Assembly (NCBI GenBank): GCA_028023455.1
Contig: JAQFVV010000006.1
Coordinates: forward strand, 17,236,001 to 17,300,000
Direction: 5' to 3'
Length of the DNA stretch: 64,000 nt
Source of the DNA: Epiperipatus broadwayi
Lineage: Eukaryota; Animalia; Onychophora
Shown: piece by piece, positions 1 through 64,000 of the stretch
How the letters are laid out: every line of letters begins with the position of its first letter
Numbering within the stretch: the stretch's first letter is position 1
Translations under genes and position numbers: made by a program
Notes under the pieces: generated by a model
What the model was told of the DNA's origin: nothing
What the model saw: the letters and a program-made list of their open reading frames with translations, nothing else
Database searches by the model: none

Positions 1-55
1 TGATACACATGACCATACACATATAGAAAAGATAAATAATCACCAATATACGTAT
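1..55 (-). repeat. Inverted fragment of hammerhead repeat family 1 (runs off window start)
   Basis: Reverse complement of 1-55 matches 113-166 (ATACGTATATTGGTGATTATTTATCTTTTCTA...GGTCATGTGTATCA). The fragment stops at the ATACGTAT palindrome. Confidence 0.9.
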
Positions 56-73
56 TATATGTGTGGGAGATGA

Positions 74-130
74 TAATCTGGATCAACTGATAAGTGCTTG
101 TTTAGCACGAACTACGTATATTGATGATTA
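74..130 (+). ncRNA. Type I hammerhead ribozyme motif, degenerate core (copy A)
   Basis: ATCAA-CTGATAA-GTGCT/TGTTT/AGCAC-GAAC-TACGTATA-TTGAT. Helix I is atcaa/ttgat, a compensatory change relative to accaa/ttggt. G8 and A15.1 are mutated. Confidence 0.75.
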
Positions 131-552
131 CTTATCTTTTCTACATGTGTGTGGTCATGTGTATCAGTTGCGTGAGATAGTGTGGATAGTTGAAGGGTGC
201 TGGAAAGTCTGAGTTCAAATCCCTTACATTTACAATTAAGCTCCAGGTTTGTGAAGAGTGCCTAGTTTTCAAATATTTACACATGAAGCTTGTATCCTGC
301 CCATCCCTCTTCTATGCATTTAAATGGATAAGGTCCTATACATGAGGGGTCAGAGTGACTTCAGGTCAACATGGGCATGGCAATAATATTGGCATCAGCA
401 TGGGATTTGGGCTTTCATCATCAGATTTTCAAGGATATGGTTGGCTGAAAAGTTGGAAGTTGGAGTAGATTGAAGCCTGTCCATTAAAGTGTGAATATTT
501 GCTATCTTAGTATAAACTGAGCACTGATTATATATGTGTGTGTAGGAGATGA

Positions 553-602
553 TAATCTGGACCAACTAATGAGTGCTGGTTTAGCACGAAATATGGTGAT
601 TA
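553..602 (+). ncRNA. Type I hammerhead motif, degenerate (copy B)
   Basis: ACCAA-CTAATGA-GTGCT/GGTTT/AGCAC-GAAA-TATGGT. G5 is mutated and helix III is deleted. Confidence 0.6.
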
Positions 603-1384
603 TTTATCTTTTCTACATGTTTGTGGTCATGTGTATCAGTTGTGTGAGATAGTGTGTATAGTTGAAGGGTGCTTGAAAGTCTGAGTTCAAATCCCTATAT
701 TTACAGTTATGTTCCAGGTTTGTGAAGAGTGCCTGGTTTTCAAATATAATCTACTATGGAACTATCAAGCTCACCCTGTCAGAGTGCTTTAAGGTCATAT
801 GATTTTTTGAAGTAACCATACTGATGTTTTACTTCTAGTTGAACAGTGGTTGATAAAGGCAGAAGACCTAAGTTAGCTAAATAGAAGAAATAATTGAATG
901 CTTTATTGGTTGATACATGGTGGGACACTTGAATATTATAAACTTCAATCTAGGAGACTTTCATTTTGAACCTGCCATTATTGTTGCACTAAAATGCATG
1001 CGGTAGGTAGATAGAGTAAGTAGGTTTGGTAAAATGGCAACACTTAATTATCATCAGTAGTAGATTGCCTTTGCTTCTCATCCTCTGAATATTATTTATT
1101 CAAACACCGCTAAGCTGCAACAACAACAAAAAAGCAAAAGATTTATGGGTCTACAGTCCTTAGGGAATTAATCGTTACACATCAAAGTATGAGTTAATTT
1201 GTAGTACCACTTGTAATTGTGCAACAGTGTATTTAGTTCAGTATGGCTTTGGGCAATGATGATTAAACATTTTTAATTACTCATATATTACTTTGGATAA
1301 TGTAATAATTATAATAAGCCACTCAGAAATGAGTATGTCCATTCCAACTCCCCCCCAAAAAGGGAAGAGGGTAACTATTATAGA

Positions 1385-2944: not shown

Positions 2945-3150
2945 TTGTAATATAAACTGAGCACTGATTATATATGTGTGTGGGAGATGATAATCTGAAC
3001 CAACTGATGATTGCGGGTTTAGCATAAAATACGTATATTGGTGATTATGCATCTTTTCTACATGTGTGTGGTCATGTGTATCAGTTGTATGAGATAGTGT
3101 GGATAGTTGGGGGGGTGCTTGAAAGTCTGAGTTCAAATCCCCTATATTTG
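2945..3150 (+). mobile_element. Family 1 copy C with hammerhead motif (2990-3048)
   Basis: ACCAA-CTGATGA-TTGCG/GGTTT/AGCAT-AAAA-TACGTATA-TTGGT. Helices I and III are intact; G12 and helix II are mutated. GAGTTCAAATCCC lies downstream. Confidence 0.85.
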
Positions 3151-5562
3151 TAATATACAACTAAATTAAATTGATTGTCATGTTATATTTGAATTCAATG
3201 TTGATTTGTAAAAAATGAAAAAGAATTGGAAATTCAAAAATTAATATATATATATTTTTAATTTATGTGAAATTAAGTAGAATAAAAATTTTGAAAATAA
3301 AATTATGTCTTATAAAGCATTGTATATTTTTTATAAATTTATTTACTCTTTGTGAGGTGGTCAAAAGACAAATTTGAGAATTAAAAGTTTCTGGATTGAA
3401 GTCAATTTACCCTATTTGTGCTTGTTTGTCACCTAATTTATGGAGGTATTAATCCTTCAATTTTATATTTTTTGCAAGTGTAAACTTTTGGTAATATTAT
3501 GTGAAAAGGGTTTTCTACAATGCTATTATTTATAGTTTATGGTTTACATTGTGACTTTTGGAATGGAGTTGTAATTGTTTCTATTTCATACAAAGTTCTG
3601 TTTGAAGATAGAGTAATACAGAGGATATTATGATAATGCAAATAGTCATTTGATAGTATACAGTTAGAGCTACCTCATATAATGAGTCCAGCTGTTCCTC
3701 TAAATCCATGTTACCTAAATTATCTACTATTGAACTAAGCTTAAAATATAGCCATTAATTAGAGGTTGTAATTAGGCTATCTCATCCTCTCAGGATTTTT
3801 AAAGCACACATGTTTTGTCCTATCAATTACCATTAATGTTTTATCAATCCTTTCCTCAAATTAGATATTTTTAGTTCAATTGTAAATGGATATTATTTGT
3901 TTTTAAAAATGCATTTCTTAAAATCATATCTTTTGAAATAGAATATTTAGGTATTTTTAAATTAAATAAAAGTTTTGAACAATTGCTTGCTTTTATTTAA
4001 ATACTTTTTAAAAAATAAAAATTAAATAACTAAAAGTTTATTTTGTTACTAAATAATATTAACCAATTAGAGAATTAAAGTTAAAAAAAGGTGTGTATCA
4101 TTTTTTAAAAAATATCGAACTGCATTAAGTTAAAAAGTCCAGCTGTTACAACCACAGCTTTCTCTACCTATGAATATTTTGCTGTCAAAGCATTTTTGTT
4201 TTACAATTATGCCTGTCACATTTTTAATAAGAGGCTCCATCTATTGATAATAAATGAAACTAAACTTTAAAAGTATTTCGCAAGGAATATAGGATAAATA
4301 GTCAATTGGTAGCATTGATAGTGACAATTTGCTTTTCTTTGAATGCCATCAAATGTAACTGACATTTCTTAAACATTTACCCATCTATAAGAAAAAAGAA
4401 TACATGACTGAATTTTATGAATTAGAAACTTTTTTTATATAGTCGTCAAATTATTCACTTCTGTAATTAAAAATAGTTAAGTAAAATAAAGAAGTTTATT
4501 TATGCAAACCAAAAATATAAAAATTTAAAATCATGTTCCTGAATCAGGTGTAGAGTTTTTTTTATTAATATGAACATTTTTTGAAAATAATAATTATTCA
4601 AGTCACATTTTTTTCCAATTTTTATTTGTGGACCACTCATCTCATTATATTGCAATTATGCATCCATGCAAAAATTCCAACTCATCATTGCCATAAGGTA
4701 GAAACTGATTTTATTTCCATTGTTAACAGCTTATAGAAGAGTAAATAAAACGGCACCTTAAAGTTATTTTCAAATTTTGTCAGTACGCTTTTTGTCTTAA
4801 ATTTTGTTATATCTCAACTATCTACCAGTATAAAAATTTCAGAGCATTCTGGTGATGTTGGAGCATTGAATGATGAATACAATATATGCATCTATCTGAA
4901 GCCTGTGAATATTTGAAGCAGACAAAGCTGATGGTATTTCTGTTTTATTTTTTCCCGTGGCAAAATATTTTTGATTCATCAAAATGATTAATCCATTAAA
5001 ACATCACATGATGACATTTTTTTGTACTTGCCCAAGCTGTTTAAACAACAATTTTTTCTCCCACAAGAATGCCATTAGATAGGGATTGTAAAACATTCTA
5101 GCATCTATTAGTGAGAAAATTTGCACTAGATGGAACCAGTGATGGGAAAAAATGCTACTGTTTTATCAAAATGATCTTGAAGCGATTATAATTTAGAAAA
5201 TAAAATTAGTCCTAAAAAGGAAGTAGCACTTTGCAAATAAATAAAACATTAATAGAAATTAATAGAAATTGAATTCAAAAAATGAAATATAAAAATCCAA
5301 CTTTTAATAATAGTAATAATAATATTGTTGTTGACAAGAAACATTTTGTTTTTGATGTCAGTAAGTTTTCATTTGACAAATTAAATTCTGTTAAAAAGCT
5401 AATATGTTTTAAAAAATTACTATAATTGTCACACATTTATTAATTAACTAATTTATTAATAATTTTACAAAAAATATATTAAATAAAAGTATATATATAT
5501 ATATTTTGTATATTCTTGGAGTTTAGATGTTATTATAGGAGATTTGAACATAGACTTTCAAG

Positions 5563-5692
5563 CTTCCTTCTGCTATCCACACTATCTCATACTACTGATA
5601 CACATCACCACGCACATATGAAAAAGATCTTTCTCACATGTGGGTGGTCTTTTGTATGGGTTCTATGAGCTAGAGTGTATAGCTGAAGGAAA
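5563..5692. repeat. Two family 1 body fragments in inverted orientation (no core)
   Basis: TATCCACACTATCTCATAC...CATATGAAAAAGATC (minus) is followed by TTTCTCACATGTGGGTGGTC...GAGCTAGAGTGTATAGCTGAAGG (plus). Confidence 0.65.
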
Positions 5693-5708
5693 TTCCATAA
5701 TTGAATCT

Positions 5709-5922
5709 AAAATATATATATATAACATAAGTTTAAATTTATTTTATATATTTTTATGGTGTAAATAATAGCTTATTGCATAAGTGCAGAAATGTCCTTT
5801 CACTTTATTGTCTTTAAAATATATATATATAACATAAGTTTAAATTTATTTTATATATTTTTATGGTGTAAATAATAGCTTATTGCATAAGTGCAGAAAT
5901 GTCCTTTCACTTTATTGTCTTT
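5709..5922. repeat. Tandem duplication, 2 x ~107 bp
   Basis: 5709-5815 is essentially identical to 5816-5922. Confidence 0.95.
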
Positions 5923-7963
5923 TTTGATTCCTAATAGCTATTGACATCTAGATACTTTAATTAAAACTAAAACAAAATTATATAAAGCTAATTTTAAATT
6001 AAAATTGGTTTAATCAATCACATCGCTTGCACCATTAATGAAAGGTTGCATGAAAATGATTTAAAAGTTTGTGATTTTTAGTACTCATTTATTTGTTAGG
6101 CAGGAGATTATTATACCATTTTTAACTTAATTACAAACTTTAAATATTATTGAAGAGTTGAGTACTCTTATTAGGTATTCTACTCTACTAAATGATTATT
6201 AATAATTATTAATATAGTTATCTAAAGATGATATTCCTAAATGTCTGAGAAGTACGACACTAGTAGATTAAATTATAGTGTTTTGATATTGGTAAACAAT
6301 GATGAAGAGTTGTGACTTGGGTCAAATGAACATTGTTGGCACAGCCAGAAATGTATCTTTCAAAGTCATTTTTTCCCATTTTTATTCCTATGTTTAATGG
6401 AATAGAAGTTTTAAATATATTAACTAAACAATAACAAGTGCAGTTGATGTTTAACGTGTGTTTCTGCAATCCTTAGCAAATCTCATAGATAACTATCAGG
6501 AATAGGTGGAATGGAAAATGAGCTGACACACATTTTAAGCAAATGGCTTCATATACAAGTGTATATCCATTAAATACTGAATTAAAATTAATAGTGAAAA
6601 ACCTATAGTAAAAATTTGATTTTGCCATTACCATAAGATGTTGTCTTGATATAAATATAAATTTAATATACAAAAGAGGTAGTAAATATATATTTAATAT
6701 TGTAAATATTATTATTTTTTACTATTTAATATAATTACATTTTAATTAGCTTAATTTTTAATCTGCTGAGATCAGGGAACTGAGTGCCTGTATATGTCAG
6801 ACTTACTTTTTGCCTATTTTTACACTAGACTGATTGTACCAAATTACATCCAATACCAGCACAATTTTAACATGTATCCAATGAGAAACTGATTGCTTTG
6901 ACCAGATCTGGATTTGTAAGTTGATAGAATTCAATAGCAAACATAATTTAATTCAAAAGACCTGTCAGATTATTGTTTTCCTGAAGATCTGTGATGTTGG
7001 TATTTTAGTTGTACTTATACATTGAACTATTTCCATTATCTAATACATATTGAAATGTTGTGCATATACTACTAAACCTGTGTGCTGTTGCTAATCGTAA
7101 ATTGAAAATTTAAATGAAGTATAATTTTTCAATACATAATTTTAGATGAAGGGAATAGTCCAATATATGGCATATTTTTTTTTAATTAATGAATTTTTCA
7201 TCAGACTTGAAGTTATTTTCACTGGGTTAGTTATCTTTATGTGTTGGTGTGTACATGGATAAACATTGTGGATTTACCATCTTGATATTATCTCCAAGAC
7301 CTTGAACCATCCTACCCATAACAGACAGTTATTGTGATTGTTAGTTAGTTATTCATCTGACAAATTTGAAGGGTAAAAATTCTGTATCATGGAATGAAAT
7401 TGTATTATATCTTCAGACTATTTTTTTTAATTCTCTGTTCAAAAATCCTGCAAGATATCTCAGAGTTGACTGTTCATGATAATGTGATATTAAAGGGTAA
7501 AAGTAAACCATGGGCTTAGCCCCATTAAGAACCCCCCTCCCCTTCCTTTACCAGTGGTAAAAACCACTTCATATTATAATTGTATTGTTATTTTTAGTCA
7601 GCATACGAGTCACTCAACTGGCCAGTCCACATTAATCTGGGATTTTTATTTCTTGGTCAATAATAATTAGTTACTCATTTACTGACCAATATTGGGGTTG
7701 GGTAATTAACTTATTGTCTGTAGCTCAGCAACTTGAAAGAAGAATCCCATGCTGATTGTAATCTGGGGGAGGGGGGGATTACAAAGGTTATCCAACCTGG
7801 AATGTGATTAGACAGATACGCCAGTAATTATTCAACGCGACTCGTAAAGTTTCCCATTGTAAACAATTATTTTGGAATTTCTTTAGATTAGCTTATACTT
7901 GGAATTAAAAAGACTCGACTTCTATAAATGAGCTAATGTCTTTATAATATGAGAAGTTTTTAA

Positions 7964-11967: not shown

Positions 11968-12085
11968 TATAATCCTTGAGTTTTTAATTTATTTGAGAGT
12001 TGTATTACACACTCTCCACTGTCTATTATAATCCTTGAGTTTTTAATTTATTTGAGAGTTGTATTACACACTCTCCACTGTCTAT
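11968..12085. repeat. Tandem duplication, 2 x 59 bp
   Basis: TATAATCCTTGAG...CACTGTCTAT occurs twice. Confidence 0.95.
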
Positions 12086-14214
12086 TTTAGTGCAATAGTC
12101 AATGTCACACCCCATGATTGTATCTCCATCTCTCTCACTTTCATTGCTCACACTCTTAATGAACTAGTAAACCACCCAAGTATTACTTTTTTTTAACAAT
12201 CTCTGTATTTTAAAATTCATCCTAAAGAACCTATCCTATCCAGCCATAACTTACCATTTCTTTGCTTTGAAAGTGACTCTTTCCAATAAATAAAAAAATA
12301 TTAGTAGGAAAAAGCATCAATATTTATGTATTGAAAAAATAATATTTAATTATTAAAGGAAAAAGGAAATGTTGATTCACATAAAAAAAAAAAAAAGAAA
12401 TCCAATTTTTTCTCAATAAAAAGATTTTAAATTTCTAATTAGTAATTATTAATTTTTAGTAGCCATTCACTAGTCTAGAAATTATTCAATTAATGAATAT
12501 GTTTGTGTAATGTCATTTTTCACAACACCTTTCTCACCCAAGATAGTGACAGGTTTCTACCCTCTGCAAGGTATTAAAAGCTGATACAAACCAGTCCCTT
12601 AACTTGTGTAAGACTGGTGTGAAAGTTACACTACAAAAATATTATTCATTAAGTGGATAACGTAATTGTTTATGAACATATATTAGGACTATTTATTAAG
12701 AATTTTTTAAAAAAACTTTGAGTGATATAATATTCTGATTATTTATGAAGCACCCACGAAGTCTGTTATTAGAAAGAGAAAGGCTTTAACCTTTTTCACA
12801 TGCCCTTAAACAGATCTTAATATTAATTCATTGTAAATTGCAAGATTTTGCATAAATTAATTTGTGAAAGGAAATAATGAATTCAAATCTGAAGAGAGTA
12901 ATATATCTTCATGCTCTCGAATTAAGATGCTTCAGATTGGCCTATATAAATAAGAAATTAGGTTAAAGATTCCTTCTTGTGTTGAGGTTTGAGAGATCCC
13001 TGTACAGTCAAAAACTACATTGTTTGGCTATTATACAAACATTTATGGGTGCATGTTTATTTGCTTAAAGTGTTAAAGAAGTGTTGATGAGTTTATAGTG
13101 AAATATAAAAAGAAGCAAAATATAGAGGGAGAAAGAAGAAATGGATAAGAGTTATATGTGAAAAATAAGAGATATATTAGTTGGTTTATATACAATTGAT
13201 AGCAGTCTGAAGATTCTAAACATTTGAATCCTGATATTATCTATCTTTATATAATAACTGGAATTAACTTAAACTTCCAATGAGTTGTATAGCATAAAGA
13301 AACCCTCCAAAAGACAGATGATACCATATGTCTTTCAATTATTTATAATGTGCTATTGATTCTTTACACAATAAATACATTTTCCTACTTACATCTTACT
13401 TTGTAGTTTACAATTATTATTAGCATTCATTTCATCATGACTAGTAACATTTGTTAACGAGTATAATTATTCCAATTGCAGAATAAAGAAAAAAAAGTCA
13501 GTTTGTAAGGTCTATAATCAATGGAACACAAATGCTATCATTTATTTGTGCTGCTTTCTTTTAATATCTGCTCTTTTCCATTGTGAGTAGATGTGTTTTG
13601 TTACCATATCTTTCCAATGAAAAACTCATTGGAGAGTTTTTGAGATAATCTTTAGGATATTCATTTACTATTCGTCTAAATAGCCATTCAATTATTACAG
13701 AAAAATAATTGTGTCAACAGTTGCTAGGGAGGTCAAGCAACATTCTAACAATCTGAGCACAATAGTTCTATTTAATTGGTGGTGGTTCTATTTTTATTTG
13801 CTTTCTTATTCTGAAATCAATCCAAGAATTCATTGCCAGCCGTTAAGAGAAAGAGTGGAGAACAATTTGTTAATAAATCATCCATTTACTTATTATTGAA
13901 ATATTTGTTTTAATTATTAATTAAGATGAGAATCAGATGTGGCTGATTATAATTTTTCTTTCTTTTTTGATTAGAATCTAAATAATCCAAAAAGTATTTT
14001 ATTTATCTTCAATTAGTTAAGTTTCTGACTATTTAATTGCGATTTAGATTATTTTTTTAAAAGAATACACATTTTTAATCATAATTTTTTTCTACATAAA
14101 TAAATTCAAAAATGGTAAAATATTAATTGCAGCTCGTTTATTTTTAACAAATGTGACTGCTAAAACTTAATGGTACCATGAGTCTAATAAATAGTTGAAC
14201 ATTTGACCAGTACA

Positions 14215-17603: not shown

Positions 17604-17714
17604 CTACATATTAAGTTTAACACTTGACTTCAAGCACATTGATAGTTATTTGGTTTTGCTACATATTAAGTTTAACACTTGACTTCAAGCACATTGATAG
17701 TTATTTGGTTTTGC
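17604..17714. repeat. Tandem duplication, 2 x 55 bp
   Basis: CTACATATTAAG...TTTGGTTTTG occurs twice. Confidence 0.95.
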
Positions 17715-20188: not shown

Positions 20189-20286
20189 GTTTTTTTTTTC
20201 ATATGTCAAAGCATTGACCGGGAAGTGAACCCCGGCCAGCTGCTTGGAAGGCAGCTATGCTAACCACTAGGCCACCAATGCATGCC
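20189..20286 (-). mobile_element. tRNA-Gly(TCC)-derived SINE with 13-bp TSD
   Basis: tRNA-like body at 20211-20281 (GCATTGG...CTTCCAA...TCAATGC) with a mutated T-loop (TTCACTT), tail TTGACATATG-(A)n, and TSD AAAGTTCATATTG at 20176-20188 and 20287-20299. Confidence 0.9.
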
Positions 20287-31473: not shown

Positions 31474-31725
31474 CATTCCATCATCCAGATTTTCAATAAT
31501 ATGAATGGCCGAAGAGTTGGAGAGTGGAGGAGGTTATCCATTAAAGTTGGAAGATATGTGGGAGATGATTATTTGGATTAACTGATGAGTGCTGGTTTAG
31601 CACAAAATACATATATTGGAGATCATTTATCTTTTTCGCGTATATGTGGTCATGTGTATTGGTTGTATAAGATGGGGTGGATGACTAAAAGGAGTTTTAA
31701 CATTTGGGTTAAAATTCGCTCTAAT
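31474..31725 (+). mobile_element. Family 1 copy E with hammerhead motif
   Basis: ATTAA-CTGATGA-GTGCT/GGTTT/AGCAC-AAAA-TACATATA-TTGGA at 31577-31620. G12 is mutated. Confidence 0.8.
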
Positions 31726-32206: not shown

Positions 32207-32490
32207 GGGGTGGAGTGGATTGAAGCTTGCCCATTAAAGTATGAAGATTGACTGTCTTAATATAAGCTGAGCATTGATTGTATATATGTGTGTGGAGATG
32301 ATGATCTGGACCAACTGACGAGTGCTAGTTTAGCACGAAATACGGCTATTGGTGATTATATATCTTTTCGACATGTGTGTGATCAAGTGTGCCAGTAGTA
32401 TGAGATAGCATGGATAGTTGATGATCGTGTGAAAGTCTGAGTTCAAACTCTCTATATATTACATATTGGAGTGCAGGTATGAAAAAGTCT
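32207..32490 (+). mobile_element. Family 1 copy F
   Basis: Aligns to 460-745 across the upstream region, hammerhead, body and GAGTTCAAA box. Confidence 0.85.
32301..32359 (+). ncRNA. Type I hammerhead ribozyme, intact catalytic core (copy F)
   Basis: ATGATC-TGG-ACCAA-CTGACGA-GTGCT/AGTTT/AGCAC-GAAA-TACGGC-TA-TTGGT-GATTAT. All conserved core nucleotides are present and helices I and II pair. Predicted cleavage is after 32348. Helix III has lost its palindrome. Confidence 0.85.
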
Positions 32491-36600: not shown

Positions 36601-37219
36601 GTGTACTGTAGTATTACAGTCTTTGTGTTTATATTTGTTATGCCATAAATACTTACCTGGAAGCATTAGAATATTAGAAGTTTTTGATAGACTGTATAGG
36701 GCCTTTGGAATCACACTATTCAGTTTGTAATTAAATTAATTACCAAACTCAGATTGTTTGAAGATATGCCATGGTAGTTATGGATGATTGAATATTTTTA
36801 TTTATGCAATTGAAAAGGAGTTTGCTTTGACTGAAAAGGATATTTTTATTTCCTCCTTGAGGATTCACAGATGCTATATTATTTTTTTATGCATCTGGTT
36901 GATGATGTATTTTTTCAATAAGTTCAGTTTATGTATAACTTAATATGTAAAACCACAAAGCTGAAAAATATATAATTATTACCATAAATCAAAATTAAAA
37001 AAAATAAAAAATATAAACATTCTTTAAGTTATTAGTTTTAAATGTTGTGAATTATGAATTTTGATATATACAGTTAAAATTGTGTTTAAAATGGGATATA
37101 AAAATTAAAATGTTTTGACATTTCATCTATAATCCAAGACTCAGTTATGAAAATGTATGCTTAGGGAGGGAGTAATCTTTTTCTTAGAAAATAAATATTA
37201 GATTATATAGTAAATATAG

Positions 37220-37377
37220 GGATTTGAACTTATGATTTTCAATCTATATTCATCCTCCATTCCATCTTAAGCAACCAATACACATGACCACACATGTGAA
37301 AAAGACAATGGTTCCCGTATACATATTTCATGCAGAACCAGAACTCATTAGTTGAACCACATCATAAGTTCAAATCC
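37220..37377 (-). mobile_element. Family 1 copy G, degenerate hammerhead, flanked by 17-bp inverted repeat
   Basis: Minus strand reads CTAATGA-GTTCTGGTTCTGCAT-GAAA-TATGTAT. GGATTTGAACTTATGAT (37220-37236) and ATCATAAGTTCAAATCC (37361-37377) are inverted copies. Confidence 0.7.
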
Positions 37378-37654
37378 TTCTACTTACTATAGTAAACATT
37401 TAGTATACTGAATGAATAGGTAATTTATTTTCAAATGTTTATTTAATAATAACATTGTTCAATTATAATTTGAAGAGCAAGTATACATTTGCACTTTATG
37501 CACTTATATAGACATCTTTATGGGTGATTACTTCTACAAATTACTGACAAACTTTTGTTTATATGTAGATAATAAGTAATTTACTTTTTGTAAAATAATA
37601 CAGGCGCTATTGCACCTGACCGATTTAGGTTTGAATTACAACGTTATAATTTAC

Positions 37655-37757: not shown

Positions 37758-38709
37758 TTTTTGAAGAATAAATTTTAAATAATTTGTTGAGATAATTCAA
37801 TATAATGTAAATTACTATTTAAAAATATAACTATTATATGAAACTCTGTGCTAACTTAAAAAGTATGTATTAACTCTTTCTAAAATGTCCAGTTTACAGA
37901 AATTCTCTATAGTTTTTTTTTTTTTTTCAATATTTTTTTCTTTAAGTTGCCTGTTTACAAAAAAAAAAAAAAATAATAATCATAAGAAAAAAGCAATAAG
38001 AGTTAACTTCCATTTAGATAGAAATTGAATTTTTATTAGATGACATATCATATGCATATGTAATATATACCATGTTTTTGTTATGCTGAAAGACACGTTA
38101 TAATGTTTCTCTGCATGCTTAAAGAAAGTATGTTCATAAAAATTTTAAAGGAAGTCAGCAGGACACTACATATTTTTGATTATTCTTCTGGTAGATGAAT
38201 GTGGGTAATACTCCTCATTAGTATCATCCAGTATGATGAATTTACTGGGTTTTACCTCAGAATTTACAATTTGAAAAACACTGTTATCTTCATTTTCAAA
38301 TGCCTTATAGTTCGTAACTGAATCAAATTATTTTTCATCATGTTGTATGTGTGGGTAGTTATTTATATTATATGTAAAGGAGGACAAACAAAAAAAAATA
38401 TAGCCTTGGTACCCTGGAGGCTGTGAAAACCATCATCCAAAGCAGTGACAGAAGGTAACGTGCCAAAAACAATCCATTTGTGGATTTGGATTGCAATTAA
38501 TTGATTATTCATTTGGATATTTATAACTGTAGATTACTTTCATGTGAAGAATGACCGAAGCTCACAGCAAATCATAAACTCTTATTATTATTGTCTTAAC
38601 TGTATTTGCAATATTTTGGTATGTTTTTATAGATGTTTATTTATATAAGGATGGTAGTATTTTATCATATAGTCTTGTCCAGCCATATATTTAATTGTTT
38701 TAGCAGAAC

Positions 38710-39165
<456 letters not shown>

Positions 39166-40497
39166 TACATACCTTCGGTTATTATTTTGTAATGGAGTTT
39201 CAAATTTCAGAGCTCAGTAAACCCATGATGTAATTCTAAATAGAATATATTATTACGTTGGAATAAATTATCATGTTAAGGAATACCAAATTACCATGAA
39301 TAATTGGATGTTGCTGCTTGACTGACATCTTGACTTGCCTTCGGAGGGAGATCTAACAAACGTCTATGCAATATCTAATTTTAAAATGGTATAACAGCTT
39401 TTTAGTGTGAAATCTGTAATGCAGTTTTTTTTCTTCTTTTCACTTTTTTTTTCTAACAATTATTTTTATGATGTTTGGTCATGTAGAAAGTCAAGATAGA
39501 GAATACAATATTAAAAGTTTGCTTTATTGATTTTTTGAATAATATTGATATAGGCCATTTACTTTTGTCAGAGCAAGTTTATTATCACCTTCCACCTTCT
39601 TACTTTTTATGTTTCAGTTGATTTATTACTTTATTCATTTCTCACAGATTCAATATTCATATTTTTTTCAACTAGAATTTATTAATGGGGCAGAAGTGTT
39701 TATATATATATCTTGGGTTGAGTTCAAAGTTTAAAAAATGAATTTAAAAACCAGTTTAATAAAAAAAGCAACATCTTAATTCACAGTAAATTATTATTAT
39801 TGTTTTTTTGTTTAGCAAGGATATTAATATTTTCCGATCAATTTGTTATTGTCTGTTTTCTATATGAATGTGTGCTTAATTGATATTTGTAGGCGTGTTC
39901 ACTGTTGAACTGCCCTGCGCAGTTTGGTACTCTAGTTGAGTAACCAATTCTGAAGCTCAAAATCTACGGATTGTTAACCAGGGTTACTTCCGGTTGTTGA
40001 ATTATTTATGGACTCTAGAGAAATAAACTATTCAGTTATTTTTTTACTGTTACTATATTTATAACACACACATATTTCTCAATTAAAGTTCTTTTGAATA
40101 AAATTATTTTAAACTTTTTTCAAGTTAATATATATATAGTGACTATTTTTGAAAAATATTGTATTATGAAACCTTTATCTCAATGAAAGTCTTCAGGGCT
40201 GGCTTGCCTTATGCTCAAATTATTAGCATAGTTTTTTACCAAAATTTTCAAAATATTTAAATCCTTTCTTCATATATTATATTTGTAAGAAGGCCAGAAA
40301 ATATTTTACCAATTGTCATTTGTGTCTAGCTATTATTAACAGGAGAATAAACACCTCTGGTTAAACTGGTTTTATCAGATGGGTGCCAATGCACTGATTG
40401 TAAAAATAAAATATAGTTGTAATTTGATATAGTTTTCGCCATAGATGAGGAGAACAGGAGATTTTTATACTCCTAAAAATAATGTGAGCTTGAATTG

Positions 40498-50067: not shown

Positions 50068-50120
50068 ATTGTTTTATTGTATTTATTTCCACCATTGTTT
50101 TATTGTATTTATTTCCACCA
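50068..50120. repeat. Tandem duplication, 2 x 26 bp
   Basis: TTGTTTTATTGTATTTATTTCCACCA occurs twice. Confidence 0.9.
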
Positions 50121-50170
50121 TCTAATATTATGTATTAAATGTCTTTAGAAAAATTAAACTTTATTTAAAT

Positions 50171-52482: not shown

Positions 52483-53307
52483 CACAAGCATAAGAGGAGG
52501 TGGTCATGTGATGTGCTGAAAGTTTGAGACTTGTAATCAAACTATAGAAAATTGCTTTCTAAAAAATTCTAAACAAATGATGAAAATATGTACAAGAGAT
52601 TGTGATCTGGTCAAATGATGAATGCTGGTTCAGCATGAAATGCACACCTTTGGGATTATTTATCTTTTGTCACATATCTTTGGCCATATGTTTCAGAAAA
52701 TTGTAATGAAATAGTATATGAAGTTAAAAGCATATCCCAAAAAAGAATATAAATGACATTAAAATTACACTATGAGCTATGTATGTCTTACTCATTTGAA
52801 AAAAGTAAACTGGGGGTTTCAAAAATGCATCCAGAGTGAGAGAGGTTTGTCTGACTGGTTGTGATATGATTGAGCTCCAGTGAAAGATGCAATGAGATAA
52901 GAATAAAATTTGAATATATATATTCATCAATTATGCAATTTAATTTAAAAATTATATACATTAATATATTAAGAAAAAATATTTAACAAAAAAAAAAAAC
53001 AGAATAATGCTATTATGATAAAGATACTGGAACAATAAATCACAAGAGATTAAGAGAGCAAGCACATTTACATGTGGATGTGTTCTCAAATCTTGGTGTG
53101 TAGTGTGAATGTATTCATGTGATCACATGTTAAAAAGGTAAAACTTAGTACTGTATTCCTTTTCAATCTGTTTCGGGGGGGGGGGGGTAGGGGTTGAAGA
53201 TGACATGCAAGAGATAAAATACCTAAGCAATGTTAAAATTGTAAACTTCCCATTATTTTGCCTCATAAATATCAGTAGCCATTTTCTTATGTTTTTACTA
53301 CGACAAG

Positions 53308-53465
53308 AGTAATTAGAAGGGATTTGAACCCAGACTTTAAAGCCTCCTCCAGTCATCCACTCCATCCCATACAACCGATACACTTGTGAAAAAGACGATC
53401 TCCAAGATACGTATTTCGTACTGAACTAGCGCTCATCAGTTAGTTCGGATCATCATCTCCTATCA
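53308..53465 (-). mobile_element. Family 1 copy H
   Basis: Minus strand reads GGAGATGATGATC...hammerhead...GTGTATCGGTTGTATGGGATGG...AAAGTCTGGGTTCAAATCCC. Confidence 0.85.
53394..53454 (-). ncRNA. Type I hammerhead ribozyme, intact core and palindromic helix III (copy H)
   Basis: GATGATC-CGA-ACTAA-CTGATGA-GCGCT/AGTTC/AGTAC-GAAA-TACGTA-TC-TTGGA-GATCGTC. AUC triplet, with predicted cleavage between 53406 and 53405. Helix II has one mismatch. Confidence 0.85.
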
Positions 53466-54431
53466 CAAGAATAGCATTTGCTGTTTCAATCTCCATCTTT
53501 AAATCTTTCCTGACTTCTTCTAATGTTTTACATTTCAAAAAATCATAATTAATAGTTTAGTTTTACATTTTAAACTACAATTGAAGACATTAAAAAAATA
53601 TCTACAATCATGTTTGAAATGTAAAATATGTTAGTTATAATCCCTAGTGATAGAGTCACAGGTTTGAGAGCAGAAGGTTCTCTGACTGAAATTCATCGGG
53701 TCATTTCTGGTGCTCGAACATCACCTGCCTTCCCCGCGCAATTATTATTTTTCATTATTATTGTTTTTATTGACAGGTATTTGTCATGAATAAGAGCTTG
53801 CTAAAAACGAACATTTATAATGGGATTTTGTGAACATAATATCTATATAATTGAAGTAGAATAAATATATTTTTAAAATATATATAAAAAACAATAAATA
53901 TATTTTTAGCTGCTACTCTTGATGTTTTGTTATTATTTTCTTCTAAGGGAGGAAGGAGGATTGATGTTTGTATAAAATTCCTATCTGTGTTCATCGAGCT
54001 TATTTAAGCGGTCGGTATTAAAAATTACTTTAAGCGTCTGAGACTTTACTGAAGGCATGTTTGCAGGTTAAGTAAATGTGTTATTAACTAAGAATATCCC
54101 AGATGCTCATTAGCATATATCAGTTTTACAATTATCAAGGAGAGATTTTTTTCTTTCAAAAGATTCAAAACAATGATGTTGCTAAAGATAACAACTTTGC
54201 TTTCAGATTTTAAAAAAAAGAAAAGAAAAAGTGATTTCTTGATTAAAGACGTTAATCTACAAGGAATATTTCATTTTGTTACTTGTGAAATTGGTATTGG
54301 CAACAAAAAAAAAAACACGGATACCCTTAAAAGAATTTTAAATGAAATTTAAATAAGTGATATAGTTTTTATGGCAATATAAATATCCTGACTTCAGTTT
54401 TTTTTGTAGATAAGTGAAAAATGTTGAGCAA

Positions 54432-59650: not shown

Positions 59651-61113
59651 AGTTAAATGTATGAAGAAAGGAAAAGCTCCAGGTAATGATGGAATTATAA
59701 TTGATATATTAAAAGAAGCAGGTGAAGAAATAGAATTTTTTTTAAGTAAAGTTATACACCAAATATCTAAATGATAAAGATGTACCAGATGATTGGAAGA
59801 ATTTAGTAATAATATTAATATTTAATAAAGGTGATAAAGAAGATATTAGAAATTACAAACTTATCAGCCTTTTATCGGTTTTATACAAAATTTTTACCAA
59901 GATAATTACAACTCGTCTACAAAGAACATTGGATTTCCACCAACCAAGGGAACAAGCTGGATTTAAAAGTGGTTTTAGCACAGTAGATCATATCCAGGTA
60001 TTGAGAGAAGTTATAGAAAGGACAAATGAATATGAGTTGCCATTATGTTTTGGATTTGTAGATTATGAAAAGGCATTTGATTCTATAAACATTTCTTCAG
60101 TGATTAAAGCATTGGATCATCAAAGTATAGATCCAGATATTGTCATATTTTAAAGAATATTTATAAAAATGCAACAGCAACAGTTAGATTATGTAATGAT
60201 ACTGGGAAAGTCAACATTCAGAAAGGTGTAAGACAAGGTGACTCCATATCTCCAAAACTTTTTACAGCAGTGTTGTAAGAAGTATTTTGTGGATTAAAAT
60301 GGGAAACTAAAGTAGTGAAAGTAAATGGAGATTATTTAAGTCATTTAGATTCTGCAGATGATATAGTTGTTTTTGCAAATAATGCTTCAGAGCTGCAGGA
60401 AATGTTGCAAGAGTTATCAAATGAAAGAGGACTAAAGATAAATGTTAAAAAGTCTAAAGTAATGTTTAATCGATTTGCTCAAAATATGAAAATAAAGATT
60501 GATTATGATGAATTAGAAGAAGTTAACAGTTACAAATACCTTGGTCAGATTATTAATACAGATGGAAACATAATGGATGAAATTAAACATAGAATTAAAC
60601 TTGGTTGGAGTGCTTTTGGTAGAAATAACTTGATACTAAAAGGAAATATGCCTATGTGTTTGAAAAGGAAGGTTTTTAACAAATGGGTTTTACCACTTCT
60701 TACTTATGGATCTGAGACTTGGACACTTAATAGAAGAGCAATACAGAGACTCCAGACCACTCAAAGAAGTATGGAGAGATGCATGTTGGGAGTAACAAGA
60801 AGAGATCGAAAACACAATGTATGGGTAAGAGAACAAACAGGTGTTACTGACCTCATTGAAAAAATTAAAAGATTGGAGTTGGGCTGGACATATTGCTAGA
60901 AAAGATGATAATAGATGGGCAATTGAAATCTTAAACTGGATTCCAAGAGATTGTAAAAGACCCAGAAAGAGACCACATGTGAGATGGATGGATGAAATAA
61001 GAAAGTGTGCAGGGGTGATGTGGAGAAGAGAAGCTAAAGATCGGAGAAGATGGATTAAACTTGGAGAGACCTTCATCCTGCAGTGGATTGATAATGGTTG
61101 ATGATGATGATGT
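59651..61113 (+). mobile_element. 5'-truncated RTE LINE (family A), RT domain with stops and frameshifts
   Basis: KAPGNDG, QPREQAGFKSGFSTVDH, FVDYEKAFDS, KGVRQGDSISPKLF, SADDIV (the [YF]ADD motif altered), YKYLG, LTYGSETW, WAGHIAR and a (GAT)n tail. Confidence 0.95.
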
Positions 61114-61139
61114 ATGGCTTTATATAGCTCAAGATTTCA

Positions 61140-62480: not shown

Positions 62481-63024
62481 ATCCAATATTCACAAATCTA
62501 AAAATTCAGATTCCACTCCTATGCTAATACTGTCAATGGTCACTAGCATTACTTGAAGAAGAGTTGAAAAATAATAGCACTCAAAAAATGTTGTATGTTT
62601 GGAAAGTTTAAATGAAATCTTAATTTTTCTATAATTATACTGTAATAATTTTGTGTATTGATATACTTTATGCATTGGGCAAGAATTTCAAAAGATATGT
62701 ATTTCTTGTTATAAAGCATCTTCAAACGGCAAACATTAAATGGTTAAATAAATTAAAGAGAATAATTTTAATTCACTTGTGCAAATTGGGCATACTCTTA
62801 GCCGTACTCAATTAATGAATCTGTGTTCTTGATAAACCATAGGTCTTTTATTTTCCCTTTACTATCATTCTCTTCATTGCAAACTATCTTTCTATTTTTA
62901 GACTCAAAAACATGACCTTAACTTTAATATAAGAGAGCCAACTAAGATTCTACAACTTTTAAGTTTTTGGATCATAAAACGGTATAAGGTCATATTTTTG
63001 ACCACAAAAATGTAAGAAGAGTTT

Positions 63025-63140
63025 GCAATCTACATTTATCTTTTTTACATGTGTGTGGTCATGGATATCAATTGTATGAGATAGTGTGGGTAGTTGAAGG
63101 GTGCTTGAAAATCTGAGTTCAAATCCCCTATACTTATAAT
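63025..63140 (+). repeat. Family 1 body fragment starting just downstream of the predicted cleavage site
   Basis: ATTTATCTTTTTTACATGTGTGTGGTCATG...GAAAATCTGAGTTCAAATCCCCTATA. Confidence 0.85.
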
Positions 63141-63899
63141 GATAGAAAATAAAGAGAAGCCTTATTTCGTAATAGTAGAGACTGATGAATCAAACATCCA
63201 CCAATATTCCATCGAGTGCAACTTGGAGCATGCACAAGTAATTTTTTTTTATTACATTTACCAGTCTAATATATTGTTTTTTTTCATAAGTTTGCGTTTT
63301 AAAGAAGGTTTTTGTGCACAGATAATTTATTTAAGAATTAAATAATGTATCTTATTGAAATTTTTGCTTCATACAAGCATTTATATGAATGCACAAAAAT
63401 AATTTAGTTTTAAACAATGATAGTCAGCCATTACACATGCATTGTATTGTTATATTAAATCAAAATTTTTGTCGAATGTGAGAAAACTCGATCCAAGTCA
63501 CATGATAGAGACTTTGAAAAGGTAAAAGCACATGTGTAAGGGTTAATTACCTTCTGTTTAAAATTACAGTTTGAAACTGTGCTAGTAAATATCTTAGTCA
63601 ATTACATAAAAATAATTAAACATTACTAACAGGATAATAAGCATAAACAAATAAATAAGAATAAAAGTAGAAGATAATAACAACGACAATAATAATAATA
63701 GCAGTAAAACTTAAAAAAAAAAAAAAGATTTATGCCTTTTATTTATTTTATTTTTGAAGGTTGATAGACTAAGGAGAAAAGCAAATTCAATGCAGTCTTA
63801 CAATCAATAGATGAAATGAATTCTTATTTTAGCTATCAGTTATTATTTTACATATGATATTTGAATACAAGTATAATTTATATACTTGGAATTTAAATG

Positions 63900-64000
63900 T
63901 AATTATAGGGGATTTGAAAACAGACTTTTAAGCCCCTCCTCAGGTATCTACTATATCTCTTACAATCGATACACATGACCACACACATATGAAAAAGATA
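63900..64000 (-). repeat. Family 1 body fragment (runs off window end)
   Basis: GGGGATTTGAAAACAGACTTT...GATACACATGACCACACACATATGAAAAAGATA. Confidence 0.85.

Follow-up and report, generated by a model that had tools for sequence, protein, structure and literature searches.

What kind of element places two hammerhead-ribozyme cores 479 nt apart at the left end of a window of the onychophoran Epiperipatus broadwayi, and how did it reach that site? The window, meaning the whole stretch analysed here, comprises 64,000 nt (28% GC) of a 5.6-Gb assembly of 18,588 contigs (G000:C6:17236001-17300000). An initial annotation, made from the letters of the sequence, had proposed a type I hammerhead on a high-copy, non-coding, retrozyme-like repeat that is present as a dimer at window positions 56-800. 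The order of the core boxes, the form of helix III, the compensatory changes in helix I, the unit-length tandems and the insertion footprints were all found to fit this proposal. We conclude that window 1-747 and the 67 nt that precede it are probably one ancient and decayed insertion of a ~477-nt non-coding element of the animal non-LTR (long terminal repeat) retrozyme type.

The insertion is a composite of two arms. An inverted, 5'-truncated sister copy (unit positions 48-171, minus strand) occupies window 1-54 and extends 67 nt further upstream, and its outer end lies at T1, one of two 3' termini (T1 and T2) that recur throughout the family. This arm is 90-91% identical to the direct copies and stands head-to-head with the direct array, which covers 55-747 on the plus strand. 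The array holds ~1.45 units arranged head to tail: a truncated start at unit position ~466, a full 479-nt unit (66-544) and unit positions 1-211 (545-747), with its end at T2. The initial annotation had reported no target-site duplication (TSD). We found that ATATAATCTA flanks the whole composite, with the right copy at 744-753, where its first 4 nt overlap the end of the element, and the left copy just outside the window, 68-77 nt upstream of window base 1 (1358-1367 of L001; L-numbers denote repeat-bearing loci extracted from the same genome). There is no open reading frame (ORF) of at least 120 aa within window 1-800 and no poly(A) at the 56-800 copy, as had been annotated.

Both hammerheads of the direct array are inactivated. 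Copy 1 (66-140, plus strand, with helices I, II and III) scored 103.7 bits with R1, a covariance model of the family trained on 150 genomic copies of the hammerhead region; in its core, CTGATAA (G8>A) and GAAC (A15.1>C) replace the consensus boxes. In copy 2 (545-615, plus strand; 92.5 bits) the first box is CTAATGA (G5>A), and a deletion of ~8 nt takes in helix III and the cleavage site. Type I hammerheads cleave after U16.1-H17, and by this rule the position homologous to the cleavage site in copy 1 would fall at 120/121 on the plus strand, between GAAAUACGUAUA and UUGG. The 3' arm of an extended helix I follows at 121-182, and in the predicted fold of the monomer RNA it pairs with a 5' arm at 501-565. 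Also on the plus strand, a B-box- or T-loop-like sequence GAGTTCAAATCCC (211-226) precedes T1 (...CATTTA, ending at 232), which is internal here, and the alternative terminus T2 (CAAATATTTA, 270-279) is likewise internal in unit 1, the array ending at the homologous positions 741-747. The claim of a unit-length dimer holds as to the spacing of the cores, but not as to the release of a monomer: because both ribozymes carry inactivating changes, the 56-800 dimer could release none today. Since its direct sister units are only 88.6% identical, the insertion belongs among the older ones of the family. A match of window 1-166 to the Rfam family mir-3149 (38.3 bits; gathering score 100) was rejected as an artefact of the head-to-head arms and does not mark a microRNA gene.

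The ancestral motif can be read from the family as a whole. Three subfamilies, A, B and C, are distinguishable, with majority sequences that are 85-91% identical, and the genome-wide majority sequence of subfamily A is the same as the consensus that the initial annotation had drawn from copies in the window. The helix I strands of subfamily A are ACCAA/TTGGT and ATAATC/GATTAT with a TGG bulge between them, and the majority core runs through CTGATGA, helix II as GTGCT(G)-GTT-(T)AGCAC, GAAA, TACGTA and TA to the 3' strand of helix I. The type I core CUGANGA...GAAA...UH is complete in the majority sequences of all three subfamilies. Helix II has 5-6 bp. Helix III of the majority sequence consists of an A-U and a U-A pair with the palindromic loop ACGU (AUACGUAU), which bears out the palindrome described from the window. 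A helix III of 1-2 bp with a palindromic loop of 2-4 nt defines the canonical metazoan type I hammerheads, which are thought to act as dimers (PMC4209133), and the short palindromic helix III found here likewise predicts cleavage as a dimer. A strict hammerhead descriptor was applied to 353 kb (the window plus the extracted loci) and found 52 intact motifs; since ~212 homologous segments are present there, about a quarter of the copies still look competent by sequence. Most genomic copies carry core mutations. Decay at CpG sites was seen as AGCACGAAA changing to AGCATGAAA or AGCACAAAA and as TACGTA changing to TATGTA or TACATA, and because of this decay G12 is often lost.

The family is large. 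All seven cores listed by the initial annotation (87, 566, 3004, 31582, 32315, 37345 minus and 53433 minus) are present with the CTGANGA...GAAA pattern and score 45-108 bits with the family model (E 2e-6 to 5e-19), and a 26-nt core pattern matched the window four times at ≤3 mismatches, against 0 matches expected by chance. A genome search with the 479-nt unit (window 66-544) returned at least 9,034 first-look candidates, which agrees with the high copy number suggested earlier; the best full-length copies are 89-93% identical to the query. Three diverged window copies used as further queries gave ~4,000-4,500 first-look candidates each. All of these counts are lower bounds, as very common words were skipped in the search, and the family covers ~3% of the window; from both we guess at a true genomic copy number between 10^4 and 10^6. 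Mean pairwise identity is 88.7% among 35 full units, the hammerhead segments have a GC content of 0.33-0.39, and no ORF of at least 110 aa belonging to the unit was found in 87 loci.

Insertion anatomy was tabulated in 29 other loci. Their arrays consist of a truncated unit with a variable start, then a full unit and then a partial unit, amounting to 1.3-2.8 units. Two 3' ends are fixed, T1 (...CCCCTATACTTA, unit ~167) and T2 (...GGTTTTCAAATATTTA, unit ~216), and neither coincides with the ribozyme cleavage site (unit 55/56). An inverted 5'-truncated copy abuts the array head-to-head in 19 of the 29 loci, its outer end again at T1 or T2. The inverted arms and their direct partners have private variants in common, and the similarity between the two equals that of tandem sisters; it reaches 97-98% in L017, L019 and L021, and the youngest arrays sampled are ~98% identical. 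Direct repeats of 8-15 bp flank whole composites, with at least 8 bp in 19 of the 28 loci tested and at least 10 bp in 13 of them, while 6.9% of mismatched left/right flank pairs used as a control reached 8 bp. These TSD-bounded composites with sister arms indicate that each composite arose in a single retro-insertion event. The 5' ends cluster near the unit start and at unit 316-329, beside the near-palindrome GGCAATAATATTGGC (L003, L005, L006, L007, L008, L011, L014, L020, L021 and L025); these clusters may mark places where the reverse transcriptase pauses, or the 5' ends of RNAs.

A B-box-like motif, GAGTTCAAATCC, precedes T1 in all copies (GGGTTCAAATCC or GGGTTCAAATCCC in subfamily B), and a T4 run lies ~45 nt downstream of it, before T2. 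A tRNA-like 3' module was considered and rejected: ARAGORN found no tRNA in the element across 60 loci, Rfam gave no tRNA match there, and the fold is no more stable than shuffled sequences (z = -0.17). In tRNA-derived short interspersed elements (SINEs) with a hammerhead, of the Sm-alpha type, there are tRNA-related A and B boxes; these are not matched here, where the B-box-like motif stands alone. The motif may have been left by a tRNA-derived ancestor or may serve in recognition.

Support for RNA structure was measured as the share of paired cells on the named structure, compared with partners slid out of register. Over the hammerhead region of 150 copies, 89.8% of cells were paired, against 38-51% after sliding. 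Two helix I pairs show compensatory changes among these copies (A-U in 65 and G-C in 63; A-U in 61 and C-G in 20), so the helix I covariation seen in the initial annotation recurs in many copies, through few subfamily-level events. A natural monomer running from cleavage site to cleavage site (L002:1556-2033) was folded (z = -2.2 for the monomer), and helix I extended by ~54 bp as an imperfect duplex with internal loops that closes the ends of the 477-nt monomer together. The same closing helix is predicted for all three subfamily majority sequences. On the 60-pair extended structure, 92.1% of cells were paired in 69 copies, against 31-49% after sliding, and two more compensatory pairs lie far from the core (U-A in 39 and C-G in 15; G-C in 43 and A-U in 8). 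About 17 of the 60 pairs are G.U. Because on the other strand each of these would become an A.C mismatch, they point to structural constraint on the plus-strand RNA. RNAalifold on a MAFFT alignment of 222-nt segments, which was gappy, gave a poor consensus (-5.7 kcal/mol) and was replaced by the pair counts. RNAcofold of two 79-nt hammerheads was uninformative, returning a generic intermolecular duplex and no double-hammerhead fold.

Elements of this class were described by Cervera and de la Peña in 2014 (PMC4209133) and 2020 (PMC7229834). The novelty implied when the initial annotation did not recognise the family was thus overstated; judged by its anatomy, the element is a lineage-specific family of the animal non-LTR retrozymes already described. 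Like the metazoan non-LTR retrozymes of Mytilus galloprovincialis (~350-390 nt) and the axolotl (PMC7229834), it is a non-coding, low-GC tandem unit with a type I hammerhead, free of LTRs, primer-binding site and polypurine tract, with a highly self-paired monomer and with Penelope-like elements (PLEs) co-existing in the genome. Its TSDs exceed 4 bp, as do those of metazoan retrozymes when present (PMC7229834), and the size class of these elements, ~150 to >1000 nt, takes in the 477-nt unit. It differs in that its unit is somewhat longer (477 nt), its arrays are short (1.3-2.8 units) and dispersed and do not form long tandems, and its sequence is lineage-specific. Published retrozyme families are defined experimentally by expression and circularity, whereas this one is described here from DNA sequence. 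The type I architecture with a short helix III cleaves in newts, corals and mussels (PMC7229834), and the hammerheads of newt satellite 2, Schistosoma Sm-alpha and the cave-cricket pDo500 (PMC4209133) share with ours the CUGANGA/GAAA/UH core, the open helix I and the palindromic helix III of 1-2 bp. Compared with these, helix I is here ~54 bp longer and has internal loops, helix II has 5-6 bp, and the conserved loop-loop contact nucleotides were not identified. Beyond placing the family in a known class, the analysis contributes the extended closing helix, the two 3' ends fixed within the unit and the composites bounded by TSDs.

Such elements have been linked to PLEs, as argued in 2020 (PMC7229834) and again in a preprint by Li et al. 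2026 (10.64898/2026.07.22.740005). PLE insertions show a high rate of 5' truncation, partial tandems that form pseudo-LTRs, and an adjacent inverted 5'-truncated copy (PMC8557442); in our family 5' truncation, partial tandems and the adjacent inverted copy were all found, and a hammerhead in the repeated terminus is a further likeness to PLEs and their non-autonomous derivatives (Craig et al. 2021, PMC8557442; Li et al. 2026, 10.64898/2026.07.22.740005). This insertion structure fits the proposed dependence of such elements on PLEs. One PLE adjoins a copy of the family (L045:2213-3163 plus L091:1-2800; G000:C399, ~112,000-115,700). Its reverse transcriptase matches PF00078 (E 2.8e-13, above the Pfam cut-off) and its GIY-YIG match to PF01541 (18.1 bits, E 0.0034) misses the cut-off of 22.6 bits; at this locus the element forms a partial tandem whose copies are offset by 2,539 nt. 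Matches to this reverse transcriptase at 99-100% amino-acid identity number more than 100 in the genome and lie on many other contigs, with open frames of up to ~795 aa, and its ~2.53-kb unit occurs in head-to-tail arrays with a 2,532-nt period, so PLEs look recently active. The genome as a whole yielded 86,015 first-look reverse-transcriptase candidates.

In the published retrozyme model, multimers self-cleave, a tRNA-type ligase circularises the monomers, and a reverse transcriptase provided in trans copies them into tandem cDNA (PMC7229834). Applied to this family, multimeric transcripts would be cut at each hammerhead after AUA, probably by ribozymes that join two by two at the helix III palindrome, and the monomer would probably be circularised by a host RNA ligase. 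A reverse transcriptase acting in trans, most likely Penelope-like, would then start cDNA at T1 or T2 (both ...TTA). As the DNA 3' ends are fixed at these termini, cDNA would begin at defined internal TTA sites and not at a processed 3' end, and as the products exceed one unit, the template would be circular or multimeric RNA. Priming from both nicked target strands would leave outward-facing 3' ends and a TSD. The expected products are copies of more than one unit with random 5' ends, often with a head-to-head inverted sister, between TSDs of 8-15 bp. We consider it possible, and put it forward tentatively, that the internal 3' ends, the copies of more than one unit, the inverted arms copied from the same template and the TSDs around the whole composite may together be the signature of rolling-circle reverse transcription of ribozyme-made circular RNA, with both target strands primed by Penelope-like machinery. 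Catalysis, the RNA circles, the transcribing polymerase and the mobilising reverse transcriptase are parts of this reading that we infer.

Several results weigh against a working ribozyme or against this route. The initial annotation had proposed a search with the Rfam model RF00163 (Hammerhead_1), and its gathering score of 34 bits was not reached: Rfam returned no hammerhead match for the entire window, either at its gathering scores or at E≤10, and none at E≤10 in 901 nt around two intact copies. A single intact copy presented alone (91 nt) scored 10.5 bits with E 9.5; this sub-threshold alignment is in the correct register over all 45 model positions, including the model's loop-less helix III. 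Preferential conservation of the core, also named there as a test, was not significant. The core is invariant across the three majority sequences, a result that does not reach significance where only 5 of 45 positions vary at all, and conservation of the hammerhead barely exceeded that of its flanking helix (0.93 against 0.91 in one comparison and 0.89 against 0.85 in the other). The compensatory changes are a handful of independent subfamily-level events inherited by many copies. As the DNA 3' ends lie off the cleavage site, self-primed processed linear monomers would not be the template, and any role of the ribozyme in mobilisation would be indirect. Parts of the unit were found in 14 sequencing runs from nine organisms; all are contigs and none is recorded as RNA, so neither transcripts nor cleaved ends nor circles can be read from them. 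Four of the runs supplied thousands of short contigs that match the unit at 85-99%, and the joints in them that go back 470-479 nt could come from tandem DNA. A peak of depth above the hammerhead core in these matches is not usable as evidence. The matches show that the family is abundant and is present in several organisms.

The adjoining PLE belongs with these adverse points. It was rejected as the helper because its 3' region is unrelated to the unit: the one PLE family examined ends ...GTGCAAATCTTCGTTTTA, offers no terminus matching that of the unit, and holds a different, non-canonical hammerhead-like motif in its 3' UTR (untranslated region; L091:2600-2840). This PLE motif is of the minimal-hammerhead type, with an unpaired T and a 6-bp helix II (GGCTTG/CAAGTC) followed by GAAA-CG-TC. 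Its first box is CTGTGGA, with U at the place of A6, and the whole motif is identical in both tandem copies at this locus. The motif is either a non-canonical core or no ribozyme.

The Rfam scores below threshold, the flanks nearly as conserved as the core and the core mutations of most copies are also what would be expected if the hammerhead-like motif were a coincidence or a long-dead relic in an ordinary dispersed repeat, in which the long hairpin alone would matter, for instance as the feature that a reverse transcriptase recognises. The minimal hammerheads known from PLEs show poor cleavage in vitro (PMC4209133), which is in keeping with such a view. We regard it as very improbable, since three subfamilies that are 85-91% identical combine in their majority sequences all core nucleotides, both helices, a palindromic helix III and the UH site, and the decay of single copies follows CpG loss, as expected after insertion. 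A second alternative would deny the element any independence, the copies being solo terminal fragments (pseudo-LTRs) of 5'-truncated autonomous PLEs. PLE termini show exactly this combination of hammerhead, partial tandems and inverted arms (PMC8557442), and PLEs are extremely abundant in this genome, to judge by the reverse-transcriptase candidates counted above. Arrays of up to 2.8 units nevertheless join unit end to unit start without intervening coding sequence, the 87 loci searched hold no ORF of the unit at the 110-aa limit, and no sequence is common to the unit and the PLE examined, all of which makes this explanation unlikely.

It is likewise improbable that we are dealing with a SINE-like element moved by the reverse transcriptase of a long interspersed element (LINE), with inversions produced by twin priming. 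Target-primed reverse transcription by LINEs, too, typically leaves TSDs of 8-15 bp and random 5' truncation, LINE fragments lie in the window and one is nested in a copy, and a B-box-like motif is found in many SINEs. This account is opposed by the lack of a poly(A) or microsatellite tail at the copies, by the outer end of the inverted arm, which is the element's own 3' terminus and no internal point, and by the lack of a tRNA-related head according to ARAGORN and Rfam; copies of more than one unit and frequent head-to-head sisters are moreover hallmarks of PLEs (PMC8557442). The LINE ORF found beside copies in L036, L079 and the window was itself considered as a partner and rejected, because in L036 the LINE is nested inside a retrozyme copy. 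The LINE-type reverse-transcriptase fragments concerned (window 59746-61136, L036:83-1299 and L079:1-678) are 95-96% identical and end in a (TGATAA)-like repeat.

The family covariance model gave eight strong hammerhead matches in the window, one more than initially annotated: 54-150, 533-622, 2971-3067, 31549-31645, 32281-32378 and 52583-52679 on the plus strand, and 37290-37384 and 53380-53473 on the minus strand. Weak matches lie at 6293-6385 and 62973-63054. A separate 5'-truncated insertion on the plus strand (2948-3149) ends at T1, has a possible TSD (TAATATA) and carries G12>A (AAAA) in its hammerhead; the same G12>A is found in a diverged plus-strand copy at 31476-31682. The additional copy (52583-52696, plus) has lost core C3, and a subfamily C copy (37207-37384, minus) carries G5>A. 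All core nucleotides are kept in only two copies of the window. One, at 32211-32447 (plus; model match 32281-32378), has the complete core CUGACGA...GAAA, with a helix III of UACGGC in which the palindrome is broken. The other is subfamily B-like (53309-53473, minus; model match 53380-53473) and combines a complete core and an AUC cleavage triplet with a C.A mismatch in helix II. Three further places lack a hammerhead: a head-to-head pair of 3' fragments at 5517-5689, both arms of which are truncated near unit 69-72, a 5'-truncated fragment (unit 67-171) that ends at T1 (63036-63140, plus), and a fragment (unit 68-211) cut by the window end (63857-64000, minus).

Other features of the window and its genome were recorded in passing. 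A tRNA match at 20210-20281 on the minus strand (35.7 bits, above Rfam gathering) is unrelated to the repeat family, and a by-eye reading without tool confirmation suggests the anticodon UCC (Gly). Four two-copy tandem duplications are perfect (100%), at 5708-5922, 11968-12086, 17604-17714 and 50068-50121, with units of 107, 59, 55 and 26 nt, respectively; they are either very recent or assembly artefacts. A (CTAT)n microsatellite of ~93 copies at 38710-39081 explains an apparent 195-aa ORF at 38633-39220. Clusters of arthropod-type hemocyanin (Hemocyanin_M) gene fragments were noted in G000:C12425, C6545 and other contigs, a gene content that by itself would point to an arthropod host.

As the class was described before, the general picture of animal hammerhead ribozymes is unchanged by this family. 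Within the 5.6-Gb genome the family and its relatives probably fill a few percent, and they will confuse predictors of repeats and of microRNAs. The family also illustrates how ribozymes decay through CpG loss after insertion. Its TSD-bounded composites with fixed 3' ends are unusually clean material on the mechanism of Penelope-type insertion, and their sister arms allow dating. Should the rolling-circle reading be true, no evidence so far would show more clearly, at the level of insertions, the way in which animal retrozymes move, and the very young PLE family that this genome holds might open that reading to a test.

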